Positions 31,157 through 46,982 of a DNA stretch of 64,000 bases are shown here, one piece after another. Origin of the DNA: Macrostomum hystrix (lineage: Eukaryota; Animalia; Platyhelminthes); contig CATNEN010000001.1 in assembly GCA_950097015.1 (NCBI GenBank), positions 26,722,001 to 26,786,000 of the forward strand, read 5' to 3'. The notes under the pieces are model-generated. The model saw only the letters and a program-made list of their open reading frames with translations, ran no database searches and had not been told where the DNA came from. How positions within the stretch are numbered: position 1 is the stretch's first letter; every line of letters starts with the position of its first letter. The translations under genes were made by a program, and so were the position numbers.

Positions 31157-31472
31157 TAATAATTAATAATAATAATTATTGATTACACCTGCCCCAATCG
31201 GGTCAGATGTGCAGCCGACAGCACAGCCGCAGCTAATGCGCGGTGCATCTGAAGGCTGCGTACAGCTGTTCAGTCCATGGACTGGGGGGACGCCACACCC
31301 ACCTTCAATTATCCCAGCTGATGCTGGTACCCATTCAACAGCTGGGTGAACTGAAGCAATGCAGAGTTAAGTGTCTTGCTAAAGGACACAAATTGTTTCA
31401 GTGGAGTCGGGAATCGAACCCCCGACCTTCAAGTCGTGAGTCCGACGCCCTAACCACTAGGCTACAACCTCT
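31157..31472 (-). mobile_element. SINE family B, full length, probable TSD TGTAATTAATTATTA
   Basis: Near-identical reverse complement of 34996-35300; duplicated 15-mer at 31142-31156 and 31476-31490. Confidence 0.85.
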
Positions 31473-34995: not shown

Positions 34996-35300
34996 GAGGT
35001 TGTAGCCTAGTGGTTAGGGCGTCGGACTCACGACTTGAAGGTCGGGGGTTCGATTCCCGACTCCACTGAAACAATTTGTGTCCTTTAGCAAGATACTTAA
35101 CTCTGCATTGCTTCAGTTCACCCAGCTGTTAAATGGGTCCCAGCATCAGCTGGGATAATTGAAGGTGGGTGTGGCGTCCCCCCAGTCCATGGACTGAACA
35201 GCTGTACGCAGCCTTCAGATGCGCCGCGCAATAGCTGCGGCTGTGCTGTCGGCTGCACATCTGGCCCGATTGGGGCAGGTGTAATCAATTATTATTATTA
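34996..35300 (+). mobile_element. SINE family B, full length: tRNA-derived head + CORE-like domain + structured tail + (ATT)n
   Basis: Head GGTTGTAGCCTAGTGGTTAGG...GGTTCGATTCCC; central TGTGTCCTTTAGCAAGATACTTAACTCT..CTTCAGTT..CAGCTGTTAAATGGG resembles the MIR/CORE domain. Confidence 0.85.
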
Positions 35301-36559: not shown

Positions 36560-36840
36560 GGGGTTGTAGCTTAGAGGTTATAGCATCGCAGTCCCGACTT
36601 GAAGGTGGGGGTTCGATTCCCGACTCCACTAGAGCAATTTGTGTCTTTAGCGAGACACCTGACTGGCTTCAGTTCAACCAGCTGTTGAACCGGCATCATC
36701 TAAGGTAATTAAGGGTGGGTGTGGCGTCCCCTAGTTTACGGGCTTGATAGTCGTACGCAGCCTTCAGATGCGCCGCGCAATAGCTACATAGCAACACATC
36801 TCGCCAAATCGGGACAGTTGTAATAAATTATTATTATTAT
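36560..36840 (+). mobile_element. SINE family B copy between lectin copies 4 and 5
   Basis: Shared family sequence with (ATT)n tail. Confidence 0.8.
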
Positions 36841-39113: not shown

Positions 39114-40586
39114 CGCGCAACGATTTTTTTTCAAGATTCACAGTTTTAAAAAAACAGAACTTCTTTGCAGAAGGATTTTTCTTTTTGCTTAACGGCGCTG
39201 CATTTAAAACAGAACTCCCCGCTGTCCGTTTCTGACTGCTTGCAACTTTCCAGCCAGCCAATCAGATTTCGCTTGTTCGAAAATTTGTGGGATGAATCGA
39301 TGCGCTAGAGCTGAGTAGGATAAAACGTTGCTCGAAATTCGTTGAATTTTTGTTTTGATTGCGTCGTCACAATAAAATGTCTTGTACCTTGTTGTCAAGT
39401 TTCGGGAGTTAATATTGTACATTACTGTGACTTGCATAGCATCGTATTGAATTCTAATGGGTTTCTTCATTCTAGTCCGATAACGACCTTAAAGTGTTCT
39501 TCGAGTGATCCAGAAGTTCGCTGGATCTGGCATACGTCCTGAAAGGACCAAATGTGGCAAACGCACCGAGCTACAACCGCTACATTGTGATTTTGCATTT
39601 ACCAAAAAGTGGTATGTGTTAATTTTTCAAGATTTTCAAGTTAGTTAAGAAATGTTACAAAGGACTGGGAAAACTTTGCATAGGCATCATTGCGCCTCAC
39701 GAAATTCAGAGAGTAACAAGGAATAACATGAAACTGTAAGAGTACAATAGCGGCCAGAGCCAGTTAAGAAGACTGTTTTTGCTCTCTGCTTCCTGTGGAA
39801 TATATTTCCGCACAAAATATTTCTGTAGCTTCTAACTTTCTTTAGGGAGTGCTGGAAAACTGGCTGCGTCTGTTTCCGTGAGTTTCGCTTTGAAAAGCCG
39901 TGACTGTGGCTAGGTAGGTAGGTATTTCTGAAAAATTGAAGTTGCTTGGAATTGCGTGAAAGTATAGGACTTCCCTCAAATTTTGTCTTCCGTTGTTTAC
40001 AGCAAAGCTGAGTGCAAATTGGAAACAAGCAAACGACTTTTAAGCCATGCTTTTCCACTGAGCGAGTAGATGATGAAATATTAATGCCAGTCTGTTTTTC
40101 AGTTTTTTGGAATATTAAGATGTCATCTACGATAATATTCTAATATTCTGCATTCACCTTGGTGCCGATTGGCACTGGCCAGTCCACCAGGACCCATGGA
40201 TGTCAAAGAAGACTATGTGCATCACCTTCAAGGAGCTCTGCTTCCGTTGAACCTTCTCAGGACTCGCTGATCCCCTTGGAAGCCACTGTGCTGACTGGCG
40301 CTTGAGCTCAGAATCCCTCTCGTAGACCTGTCTCATCTCCTGTCACAATTCTGCTGAGAAAGTTGCTTCCCTCTCGATTAAACCGTCGAAGGTGCTCTTG
40401 CGCCAGGGTCACCCTCTCCTTGGTCCTCAGTCAGGAGATGAGGCACCCACTTTGCGAAGATCTTCTGCATGTTCAGCTGCTCAGTACGAATGCGATGCAC
40501 TGTGCTGTGAGGAATGTCCAGGAGGTCCTCGATCTCATTGCAAGTCAATCTGCTGTCAACAGTGACTGCAGCTTTGACACGCTCTG

Positions 40587-40830
40587 TGTGAGAGATACAA
40601 TTCAGACTACTGACAACAGTAGAAAAGCAAAGACTTAGCTGCAAAACTCTCACATAACACTAAAAAAATATCGCCATAAAAAATGGCAAGCTTAAAAGAG
40701 ACTTCTGTGCACACTGAGAGTGGTGGGAGAGGACGGCGTGTGGCTATGGCTGACTGACGAAGGCAAACAAGCCAGAAACCGGTCTCGGTCTGCCAGCGCG
40801 AGGTTCGTTCCCCACTTTTAGTGTGTTACA
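40587..40830. mobile_element. Solo-LTR-like element, 244 bp, TG...CA, 5-bp TSD CTCTG
   Basis: TSD at 40582-40586 and 40831-40835; excision restores transposase ...NAE-RVK...; second copy at 45733-45974. Confidence 0.88.
40743..40797 (+). ncRNA. Type I hammerhead-ribozyme-like motif within the solo LTR
   Basis: CUGACGA 40754-60, stem II GGC/GCC, GAAA 40775-78, stem III ACCG/CGGU, GUC cleavage triplet ending 40790; non-canonical A.A at the base of stem II and a bulged stem I. Confidence 0.5.
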
Positions 40831-41390
40831 CTCTGCGTTTGCATCAGTGGTGGCTGTTCTTGGCCTTCCAGACCGCTCTTTGTCTTCCATCGACAGTCTG
40901 CCTCCATGAACTTCACGGACCCATTTCCGAACCGTTTGAATTGATGGAGCATCTTCTTTCAGAACTTGTCCAAGCTCTTCATGAATCCCTGATGTTGATT
41001 TGCCAGCCAAAACTGAAAACTTGATGATGTTTCTGACGTCGTATCGTGTGAACGAAGCCGAAGTGGCCATCTTCGCAAACGAAGCTGTGTTTAACTTGAT
41101 GCCCTGCAGCTTGTGAGACTGCATTTGCTTTAAAACTTTTGGTGCCTTTTGCCATAGACATATAGATTCAGGAATGACTAACCGCGTTTACCAAAAATGT
41201 ACTTAAGAAAATTTATATTGCAGCGAAACTTTTTTTGGGATAGCCCTTGTAATATGAAACTACGCTCGTATCAGTACAGTAGATTTTGTGTGTGCCTTGA
41301 CATTAGAGGGTAGTGTATAAGTTTAAGTTGTAGTAGCTCCACGAGCAATGATGATTAGTTTGAGTAGCAAAAACGCCAAAAAAGCTAAAA

Positions 41391-44412: not shown

Positions 44413-46982
44413 TCAAACAAAAGTTTGGCTGCTGAAAAGCTTTGGCGGCTCAGGTGAGTAGGCTGATGCTGATGCTGCTGCTGCTGCTGCTGCTGCTGCT
44501 GGCAGCATGGAGGTCAAGCTGCTGCAGCTAATAGCATTCAGTGGAGCCAATTTCATCCCACCTGCGGGTGAGATGCCATCAACACTGATGATTATAAGAC
44601 ACGGATCAGAATGCTTGCAGCACTACTTTTAGTAAAAATGTTAGGAATTGAGTGAATAATTTTTTAGTTAATCTATTATTACTTAAGCGAGTTAGCTTGT
44701 CTGTAATGTTTTTTATTTATTACATATGCGCCAATCGGGCCAGATGTGCAGCCGGCAGCACAGCCGCAGCTATTGCGCGGCGCATCTGAAGGCTGCGTAC
44801 GGCTGTTCAGTCCATGGACTGGGGGGACGCCACACCCACCCTCAATTACCCCAGCTAATGCTAAATGCTGGTACAAATTTAACAGATATGCAGAGTTAAG
44901 TGTCTTGCTAAAGGACACAAATTGCTTCAGCGAAGTCAGGAATCGAACCCCCGACCTTCAAGTTGTGAGACCGATGCTTTAACCACAAGGCTACAACCTT
45001 GTCAGTAAGGTTAACAATAAGTTAAAATTATAGACAATAGAACTCACCTGCCACAGTGCCGTTGGGCTTAACCAGCGACTTGATCCTCTTGGACTTTCGC
45101 TTCCTCGTCTGAATCACATCCTTCTTCAGCGATGCTGGTCTGGGAGTCTGGAATGATACGAACAAGAGTTGAAACCTTGTGTCTGTAGGTTTCAACCTGA
45201 AGGGTTGAACCTGAAGGGTTGAACCTGAAGGGTTGAACCTGAAGGGTTGAACCTGAAGGGTTGAACCTGAAGTGTTGAACCTGAAGGGTTGAACCTGAAG
45301 TGTTGAACCTGAAGGGTTGAACCTGAAGGGTTGAACCTGAAGGGTTGAACCTGAAGGGTTGAACCTGAAGGGTTGAACCTGAAGGGTTGAACCTGAAGGG
45401 TTGAACCTTAAGGGTTGAACCTAAAGGGTTGAACCTGAAGGGTTGAACCTGAAGGGTTGAACCTGAAGGGAGCTCAGGCCGCAGTCTCACCCCGTGCAGT
45501 TTCTCGTACAATCCGCAGGCGTTGCAGACAGTCAGGCCGTGGGGGCTCCGGCGCCACAGAGTTGACTGAGCAGTTTGGCAGTTTGAGCACACGGTGCCAG
45601 CGCGTCTGGATAGCTGGGGTTGGTCGGACGAAGGTGAAAGTTGACATTTTTCGGTGTAACTGTGGTAGTCTTGATAATGAAATTCCTCTACTCAATCGCA
45701 AGACTCAATTAATTTCTTAGAAAAAGAACTCATGTGAGAGATACAATTCAGACTACTGACAACAGTAGAAAAGCAAAGACTTGGCTGCAAAACTCTCACA
45801 TAACACTAAAAAGTATCGCCATAAAAATGGCAAGCTTAAAAGAGACTTCTGTGCACACTAAAAGTGGTGGGAGAGGACGGCGTGTGGCTATGGCTGACTG
45901 ACGAAGGCAAACAAGCCAGAAACCGGTCTCGGTCTGCCAGCGCGAGGTTCGTTCCCCACTTTTAGTGTGTTACAACTCACATGTCTCCTGGAGGTGTGAT
46001 TTCCGCAGCTGGCCTCCATTGAATGGACTGCAGAACCGTCAAGTGGGGAAAAATGCTGTTCTTGCTGCTGCTGCTGCTGCTGCTGTGGTGTCTGAGCAGA
46101 TGAGGGGAGTTGAGCTGGAGCTCCACTGTACAGAGCACAGGTGGCGCAGAGGAAATGTTCAGTAGCGGATGGGCTGCAGTCACCTTCATTGTCCAGCTGC
46201 TGCTGCTGCTGATGCTGATGATGCTCCTTGAAGCGAACTCTTTGCGAGGCCGAAGGAATCAACACGCCGCAGGCGGCGCACTCCTGCTGACTGTGCGACA
46301 GGCGCGAAGAGGCGGCTGCTGCGGTGGCGGTGACGGAAGCCGCAGAGCAGGATGAGTTGATTGACGGTACAGATGCAGGCAGGAGATCACCAAAATGACA
46401 GGCGGTGCTGTACCCTGCAGGAGTTCAGGGTTAGGGTTAGGGTTAGGACTTAGGGTTAGGGTTAGAGAGATTAGAGAGGAGATAAGATAGGTGAAACAAA
46501 ATCTAAGTAAGAACTGGTGGGTGATGCGTCTTTAACTTAAAAAAAATTATTTGCAGAAGGGCTAAAGCTGTCAATGGCACATCATTTGGTGACACTTGAC
46601 CCGCAGCGCGCGACGAGGCAATTCTACCTATTTCGCTGACTCGTGAGCACACGTGCACACAGGCACACGCTCACATAGGTGTGTACATCTGCCCTGACTT
46701 TCTCATCGTCAGGCAGTGTACTCTCTCACTGTGACTTGCAGGTTGCCCCACAATGGCGTAAATTGCACAACAAGCCCCCAAGTCTTCTCTCCGCGGCTGC
46801 GCCCCAAATGAATGTGGCCTCACCGCAGAATCGAACTCAGGGACCTTGTTGCGAGAGGCAAACGCGTTAGACCACTCTGCAACAGGCCCCCTAAGCTTCA
46901 ATTAGTGAGCGATCCACAAGATGAAACCAGCAGATCGGGTGGTCACTCACAGTCAGCTGGAAGGATCGCCCCAGCCACAGCG

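Follow-up and report, generated by a model that had tools for sequence, protein, structure and literature searches.

The element and its copies

In a 64,000-nucleotide stretch of the genome of the flatworm Macrostomum hystrix (contig CATNEN010000001.1, positions 26,722,001 to 26,786,000; hereafter the window, with positions counted from its first base) we analysed a 244-bp element at 40587-40830, for which an earlier reading of the bare sequence, here called the original prediction, had proposed a long terminal repeat (LTR) origin and a hammerhead-like ribozyme. As that reading held, the element has TG...CA ends and is present twice in the window with a different 5-bp target-site duplication (TSD) at each insertion, both of which are read directly from the sequence (Table 1). 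The boundaries and the TSD of the first copy are independently confirmed by RNA contigs of four public runs, in which paralogous, uninterrupted mariner copies join 40581 to 40831 and skip exactly 249 bases (244 + 5).

A whole-element search of the genome (220,453,370 bases in 42 contigs; its positions are written below with G000 and a contig number, and sampled loci with L) gave 257 candidates; the intact 3' terminal 13-mer occurs in 166 copies, and a 37-mer across the hammerhead core was found at 199 places with up to three mismatches, the 100 places listed being all exact. The family thus comprises ~170-260 copies with 93-98% identity, the yardstick of divergence being a majority-rule sequence of the 244-bp LTR. 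Perfect 5-bp TSDs flank 34 of 49 distinct sampled copies and most of the others are off by one base, with no consensus among the TSD sequences of this sample. Such 5-bp TSDs together with TG...CA ends are characteristic of an integrase of the retroviral type, which would be supplied in trans. None of the 49 loci had a second copy within 1.2-1.5 kb; the close pairs on C8 and in the window are independent insertions, and the clusters on C5 and C1 belong to segmental arrays of 4 kb and 24 kb, respectively, whose hybrid flanks come from recombination between LTRs. An exact-pattern scan of a metagenome collection gave no matches.

Two-LTR relatives

Two-LTR parents of the family were revealed by tabulating 21 bases of right flank for each of the 166 copies, since ATTGGTTCCCTG follows five LTRs. 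Two elements are complete: L077 (LTRs at 1252-1500 and 1606-1846 of the locus, an internal part of 105 nt and the TSD GTGTC) and L079, which lies in reverse-complement orientation (LTRs at 1257-1500 and 1609-1850, an internal part of 108 nt and the TSD ATAGG); three more (L078, L080 and L081) are damaged. A complete element measures ~595 bp, two LTRs of 244 bp enclosing an internal part of 105 nt, and at 105-108 nt the internal part has no coding capacity. It holds a primer-binding site (PBS), TGGTTCCCTG, which lies 2 nt past the LTR in 5-6 copies and is complementary to the 3' end of tRNA-Glu(UUC), and it ends in a purine run (GAAGAAGGG) adjoining the 3' LTR, with ..TTTGAAGAAGGGTGTATA immediately 5' of the 3' LTR in L077, L078, L079, L080 and L081. 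From its position and composition, the TTTGAAGAAGGGTGTATA run presumably functions as the polypurine tract (PPT). Only four full internal parts and one partial one are present in the genome, a ratio of LTRs to internal parts of ~50:1, and the two LTRs share 92% identity in one complete element and 93.4% in the other, which marks both elements as old.

In one copy, L068, the LTR is joined to an antisense, nearly whole tRNA-Glu(UUC) plus CCA (Rfam tRNA 24.3 bits, E = 0.0018; junction at L068:1427-1509, which is G000 C38:24385591-24385673). As the CCA of tRNAs is added post-transcriptionally, L068 is the footprint of reverse transcription primed by a mature tRNA-Glu(UUC), a read-through into the primer tRNA during plus-strand synthesis that has been kept in the genome. 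Given this copy and the two TSD-flanked complete elements, it is very unlikely that the PBS copies are chance juxtapositions. A satellite with a 77-bp period (G000 C9:630001-631790) gives chance matches to the LTR-end/PBS pattern with two mismatches (24 among the matches listed).

The two-LTR copies with PBS and PPT, together with the tRNA read-through, identify the family as a miniature non-coding LTR retrotransposon and the window copies as solo LTRs. Window 40587-40830 is accordingly a solo LTR of a non-autonomous element of the terminal-repeat retrotransposon in miniature (TRIM) type. The LTR identity that had been predicted is thereby established, and the non-coding two-LTR parents with PBS and PPT that were to be looked for exist, L077 and L079 being complete.

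A hammerhead-like module in the LTR

Each window copy contains a module with the invariant core of a type I hammerhead (C3 U4 G5 A6 N7 G8 A9, G12 A13 A14, the pair A15.1-U16.1, and H17, which is C40784). Copy 2 and upwards of 100 additional copies have this core unchanged, and the family majority sequence also keeps it intact; helix II consists of 3 bp over an A.A mismatch, and every helix pair but one is intact. Much of the original hammerhead reading survives, namely the core letters, the type I order, the identity of the core in both window copies and the caveat about A.A at the base of stem II (40761/40774). Its cut after C40790 with a stem III of CCG/CGG is the weaker alternative, as the register with the cut after C40784 fits better: its energy is -12.9 kcal/mol, compared with -5.8 kcal/mol for the C40790 register, and the Rfam model HH9 also picks it, aligning the whole module from end to end. 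In the C40784 register the 1-bp helix III with its palindromic loop implies a double hammerhead, and a two-copy dimer, in which alone helix III would be stable, has a 6-bp ACCGGU/ACCGGU helix III and an energy of -43.9 kcal/mol, against 2 x -17.3 kcal/mol for the separate modules. Two kinds of natural type I hammerhead known from amphibians cleave well only as dimers, one having a 1-bp helix III with a palindromic tetraloop and the other a U.U mismatch at the helix II base (PMC7229834).

A tRNA-like short interspersed nuclear element (SINE) of M. hystrix also carries a type I hammerhead, which scores 38-42 bits with HH9 (E ~1e-7) and 31.4 bits with Hammerhead_1, both under the Rfam cut-offs (42 vs 52 and 31.4 vs 34 bits). 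Helix III of this SINE hammerhead consists of the palindrome ACGCGU, a feature in common with Schistosoma Sm-alpha. The LTR module is like these SINE hammerheads in its CUGANGA, 4-position helix II, 6-nt A-rich loop II, GAA, palindromic helix III and GUC, as well as in its 6-bp inner stem I and GGC/GCC outer stem; the internal loops share a UAN/U plan (UAG/U in the SINE, UAU/U in the LTR), and, around the same core, the two sets of helices differ by paired substitutions. It is unlike them in having A.A for G10.1-C11.1 and in being carried by an LTR rather than a SINE. The SINE hammerhead was found at L041:1480-1600, L044:1480-1600 and L035:1470-1590 (G000 C25:5988282, C25:4846687 and C5:543456) and at more than 50 other places, with tandem copies at C25:3259671/3260007 (336 nt apart) and in an array at C38:21.52 Mb.

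The LTR surrounding the module is itself structured. Its + strand has a minimum free energy (MFE) of -83.7 kcal/mol (z = -5.6, with 0/200 shuffles as good) and its - strand a z of -1.9, and this asymmetry, which comes from G-U pairs, speaks for structure at the RNA level. All the helices that had been pointed out beforehand (the 14-bp helix, the 5' hairpin and GCCAT/ATGGC) are in the + strand MFE fold, and across 37 copies no part of the LTR varies less than the 5' hairpin (40587-40654).

Layout of the complete elements and a proposed cycle

Hammerhead-like modules are present, at the level of the motif, in both LTRs of L077 and L079, 346-350 nt apart; both cores of L077 read CUGAUAA, and the 3' LTR copy of L079 has GAAU. 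Folded as a circle, the 346-350-nt unit from hammerhead to hammerhead has a z of -2.4 in L079 and -4.8 in L077. The complete elements therefore have a retrozyme-like architecture with two hammerhead-like modules ~349 nt apart, from which we infer catalysis and a circular RNA. Of the proposal that this is a ribozyme-bearing LTR family in an animal, the LTR family and the module in each LTR are borne out, and self-cleavage and circles are its predicted part.

Our preferred reading, which we hold to be probable with moderate confidence, is that of a TRIM-type element with a dimer-dependent hammerhead in each LTR that is processed in the manner of a retrozyme. In the cycle that we propose, the lone module would be weak or inactive, and a transcript with a single LTR would cleave poorly because helix III is weak and capped by the palindrome. 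In a transcript across both LTRs the two modules would pair via ACCGGU into a double hammerhead, and cuts after the equivalents of C40784 in both LTRs would release an RNA of ~349 nt composed of LTR tail, PBS, PPT and LTR head. This RNA might be ligated to a circle, as proposed for plant retrozymes, and the circle, primed by tRNA-Glu, would be copied to complementary DNAs (cDNAs), including single-LTR ones, that would then be integrated. A further step, possible but doubtful in our estimation, is that the family is an animal LTR-type retrozyme in which reverse transcription runs round the circle and mostly single-LTR cDNAs are inserted directly with 5-bp TSDs. If this were true, direct single-LTR integration would explain the ~50:1 excess of apparently solo LTRs without later recombination; a plainer alternative for that excess is deletion between two repeats only ~105 nt apart.

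Surroundings of the copies

The features of the two window copies are collected in Table 1. The first copy lies in a mariner-type transposase frame with a match to Pfam HTH_48 (Mos1 transposase helix-turn-helix, E = 3.8e-6), and a 186-codon open frame runs across its empty site. A paralogue of the interrupted mariner (window 40217-41013, - strand) is expressed, and its RNA contigs carry the Macrostomum spliced leader at the 5' end: the terminal stretch of one contig is the reverse complement of 24 bases of the leader (leader sequence from PMC8629364). Because the leader sits at the 5' end (loose end 41013), the transposase messenger RNA of the mariner paralogue is trans-spliced, and the four public runs are therefore RNA. 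Elsewhere in the window there is a short-unit tandem repeat at 45302-45408, and weak matches to the tRNA model (29.5-31.8 bits) at 31402-31471(-), 34996-35065(+) and 36560-36628(+), inside a lectin-array region, may be SINE heads rather than tRNA genes.

Table 1. Features of the two solo LTRs in the window, with module positions for copy 1 unless stated
Feature	Position	Strand	Basis
Copy 1, solo LTR, 244 bp, TGTGAGAG...GTGTTACA	40587..40830	+	TG..CA ends, family comparison
Copy 1 left TSD, CTCTG	40582..40586		direct reading and empty-site joint
Copy 1 right TSD, CTCTG	40831..40835		direct reading
5' hairpin TGTGAGAG/CTCTCACA, closing CTACTG/CAGTAG	40587..40654	+	MFE and centroid folds
Small hairpin GCCAT(aaaaa)ATGGC	40673..40687	+	MFE fold
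14-bp helix closing the hammerhead-bearing hairpin, 5' arm	40710..40723	+	MFE fold
14-bp helix, 3' arm	40812..40825	+	MFE fold, pairs with 40710-40723
Type I hammerhead-like module	40742..40794	+	Rfam HH9 alignment, register energies, dimer fold
Outer stem I, GGC/GCC, beyond UAU/U internal loop	40742-44/40792-94	+	
Inner stem I, 6 bp, GGCUGA with UCGGUC	40748-53/40785-90	+	
Core CUGACGA	40754-60	+	
Helix II, AGGC/GCCA, with A.A at 40761/40774 (positions 10.1/11.1)	40761-64/40771-74	+	
Loop II, AAACAA	40765-70	+	
GAA	40775-77	+	
Helix III, 1 bp, closing palindromic CCGG	A40778-U40783	+	
Predicted cut	after C40784 (original prediction: after C40790)	+	
Copy 1 host, mariner-type transposase frame, split into 40840-41187 and 40381-40575	40381..41187	-	
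Copy 2, second solo LTR of the family, 242 bp, 97.5% identical to copy 1	45733..45974	+	
Copy 2 left TSD, ACTCA	45728..45732		direct reading
Copy 2 right TSD, ACTCA	45975..45979		direct reading
Copy 2 hammerhead-like module	45886-45938	+	identical to copy 1 module

Some LTR copies outside the window sit in larger repeats. The arrays at G000 C1:46-146 kb and C5:5.97-6.07 Mb (L031, L013, L009-L011, L022-L023) have periods of 24-25 kb and 3.5-4 kb, are rich in ~60-bp satellites and carry the LTR at two sites (GGCCG, ATGAG); some of the array copies have hybrid flanks, as expected for LTR recombination within a tandem array. Right flanks beginning with TGCTGGTTAGAG... and ATGAGACAGGTGAGAGATGAGA... 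are each common to a group of LTR copies on different contigs (G000 C1:10240555, C3:11327916 and C38:18110141; also C1:17077354, C11:804208, C24:6708310, C38:24872824 and C38:25249172), which indicates that the LTR there sits in other repeat units that were copied after the LTR had inserted.

Decay among the copies and evidence against ribozyme processing

The sample of 37 copies (93-98% alike) used to examine conservation was picked regardless of the module, and, as the copies of one burst decay neutrally, conservation among them says little. Shared changes in the module are only recurrent CpG changes. Four high-frequency subfamily markers all lie within 40655-40741, outside the module and both ends, and are too few to argue from. 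G8 is changed in only six LTRs, all of them singletons except for the L077 pair, and no lineage with a mutated G8 has spread. As to the expectation that the core would vary less than the rest of the LTR, two measures differ: the module has fewer minor-allele calls per site (0.40, against 0.71 overall), whereas its private changes per site are similar to those of the rest of the LTR (0.26 vs 0.38), a difference that is not convincing.

This last comparison is one of several results that weigh against our preferred reading. Some of them concern the module as such: the predicted MFE fold of the isolated module (-17.3 kcal/mol) is not the hammerhead fold (-12.9 kcal/mol), and A.A takes the place of the highly conserved, nearly universal G10.1-C11.1 pair. 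The suggested check with the Rfam hammerhead models came out negative, as a search of the whole window at the gathering score yielded three weak tRNA matches and no hammerhead, a search of 401 nt at E <= 10 also yielded no hammerhead, and the sole match, to HH9 in a 71-nt search, has 13.8 bits (E = 0.33) compared with a gathering score of 52. In addition, both LTRs of L077 have the G8A change (CUGAUAA), which is expected to kill catalysis, so that at least one copy either integrated with a dead core or gained G8A during that very round of copying.

Other results concern the proposed cycle. In the RNA contigs of the four runs neither backward joints nor abutted LTR ends were seen, and the loose ends listed include none of the PPT-LTR or LTR-PBS kind, though contigs cannot show RNA ends and drop rare or circular forms; the LTR occurs in them solely as part of ordinary genomic sequence around several solo loci. 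A genome-wide search for LTRs that abut or stand in tandem found none. An autonomous partner was not found in a shallow search, in which CA-NN-PBS patterns matched only this TRIM family and one unrelated place. Finally, all the two-LTR copies that we found are old or damaged; intact two-LTR loci seem to be absent at present, so that the family appears to be largely extinct.

Discussion

In the main rival reading the element is the same TRIM and the module is a passenger, derived from a hammerhead SINE, that has no role in the life cycle and whose A.A marks decay; we regard this as rather unlikely. Animals, fungi and plants all have documented TRIMs whose LTR modules derive from small RNAs or SINEs, and such TRIMs have been proposed to originate when a SINE inserts into the LTR (PMC10886601). 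The LTR and the SINE of M. hystrix share an order of hammerhead, UGCC, B-box-like GGTTCG..CC and T run, the Rfam score of the LTR module is far below those of the SINE hammerheads (13.8 vs 38-42 bits), L077 integrated with G8A in both LTRs, and the RNA contigs show no circle signal. However, the similarity of LTR and SINE sequences is not significant (local score 16, against 17.2 +/- 2.2 for shuffles), so that capture is not demonstrable, and none of the LTR, the SINE and L068 has a tRNA-like fold according to ARAGORN. A passenger would also not account readily for a family of over 170 copies in which the invariant core letters are all preserved and the helices are complete apart from a single pair, nor for the 14-bp helix that closes around the module and is built of LTR sequence. 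That the resemblance is a mere chance look-alike in an ordinary TRIM LTR appears improbable. A permissive descriptor had 2 matches in 200 Mb of random sequence with the composition of the window, which scales to ~4 per genome on both strands, and the Rfam score is not significant genome-wide. In the same random sequence the class with a palindromic helix III, a 6-bp stem I and at most one helix II mismatch had 0 matches, however, with ~0.014 chance occurrences per genome by analytic estimate, and the outer GGC/GCC stem, the internal loop and the A-rich loop II are common to the genome's own hammerheads. As the SINE hammerheads share its plan, matches in random sequence are rare and the amphibian precedents exist, we are more inclined to see the module as a hammerhead that owes its form to descent or function and not to chance.

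It is also conceivable, though we give this very little credence, that the 244-bp unit is no LTR at all and is instead a miniature inverted-repeat transposable element of an integrase-related DNA transposon (Ginger/TDD type), or an introner with its own GT..AG. Nearly all copies are single, and TDD-4 and TDD-5 give 5-bp TSDs and TG..CA ends (PMC2836005); a stand-alone unit is contradicted by the two-LTR copies with PBS and PPT and by the tRNA read-through copy, and the element has no terminal inverted repeat (TIR) beyond TGT/ACA, compared with TIRs of 40-270 bp in Ginger (PMC2836005). Integrase-type DNA transposons (Ginger, TDD, GingerRoot) were rejected on this absence of TIRs (PMC2836005, PMC6839031). 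As to an introner, the LTR has T|GTGAGA at its start (position 2) and a TTTTAG that ends 9 nt before its 3' end (CACTTTTAG; 40588-40821), and splicing would leave a stop-free, in-frame footprint of 15 nt including the TSD. The insertions into open frames are in both orientations without bias, however, many of the hosting frames are low-complexity repeats, and the RNA contigs have no GT..AG joint at the window locus, so that an introner role is not supported.

Close counterparts of the flatworm TRIM are the LTR retrozymes of plants (PMC4918200), which are likewise non-autonomous and non-coding, are defined by the layout of a hammerhead in each of two LTRs, have a PBS right after the 5' LTR and a PPT before the 3' LTR, short TSDs of fixed length and many solo LTRs, and whose hammerhead-to-hammerhead unit is also predicted to fold compactly. 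They differ in having type III hammerheads rather than a type I hammerhead of the dimer type, LTRs of ~350 bp rather than 244 bp, internal parts of 300-700 nt rather than 105 nt, tRNA-Met rather than tRNA-Glu(UUC) as primer, TSDs of 4 bp rather than 5 bp, and flowering plants rather than a flatworm as hosts. In plants, moreover, self-cleavage, circles and the partner have all been shown, whereas the flatworm TRIM is known from sequence. The plant work proposed that reverse transcription round the circle gives cDNAs of varied length, including solo LTRs, and reported that solo LTRs are numerous in Jatropha (Cervera, Urbina & de la Pena 2016, PMC4918200).

For the retrozymes described from metazoans, mobilisation by Penelope-like elements is considered probable, and LTR, PBS and PPT are absent (PMC7229834, PMC7761336); a 2026 preprint (10.64898/2026.07.22.740005) agrees on both points. 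These non-LTR retrozymes and satellite hammerheads (PMC7229834, PMC7761336) share with the flatworm module an animal host, the type I order and a weak helix III (1 bp and a palindromic tetraloop) implying a dimer; their unit sizes are in the same 170-400 nt range, and the axolotl HHR_Amex2 also tolerates a mismatch at the base of helix II. They occur in tandem with longer or variable TSDs, whereas the flatworm TRIM is dispersed, has 5-bp TSDs and is tRNA-primed. In its general build it matches Cassandra, Helenus and Ajax ('TRIMp3', PMC10886601), which are also miniature, with short LTRs, a short internal part holding only PBS and PPT, TSDs of 4-5 bp, many solo LTRs and a structured small-RNA-like module in the LTR that was possibly acquired from a SINE. 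That module is a tRNA or 5S promoter unit in those families and a hammerhead-like motif here, and the ratio of LTRs to internal parts is 2-4:1 in the families counted in PMC10886601, compared with ~50:1 in the flatworm. TRIMs with small-RNA modules are reported from six animal phyla, and Platyhelminthes is not listed for Helenus or Ajax (PMC10886601).

We conclude that the flatworm TRIM is a family new to Platyhelminthes, retrozyme-like in its layout and with a predicted ribozyme activity. In the literature searched, retrozymes with LTR, PBS and PPT have so far been described only from flowering plants, with type III hammerheads, and no animal LTR retrozyme was found by title in the retrozyme literature from 2021 on. 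Should the module prove inactive, the family would still be a clean new TRIM family of Platyhelminthes with a structured small-RNA module riding in its LTR. If our preferred reading is true, the pairing of a ribozyme with an LTR would have arisen independently in animals. On the more doubtful reading as an animal LTR-type retrozyme, the LTR retrozymes of plants and the non-LTR retrozymes of animals would be linked as convergent uses of one trick. At ~595 bp the element would, if our preferred reading is true, also be a small and tractable system for hammerhead processing, circularisation and tRNA-primed reverse transcription, and it would provide a test case for the direct integration of single-LTR cDNAs.

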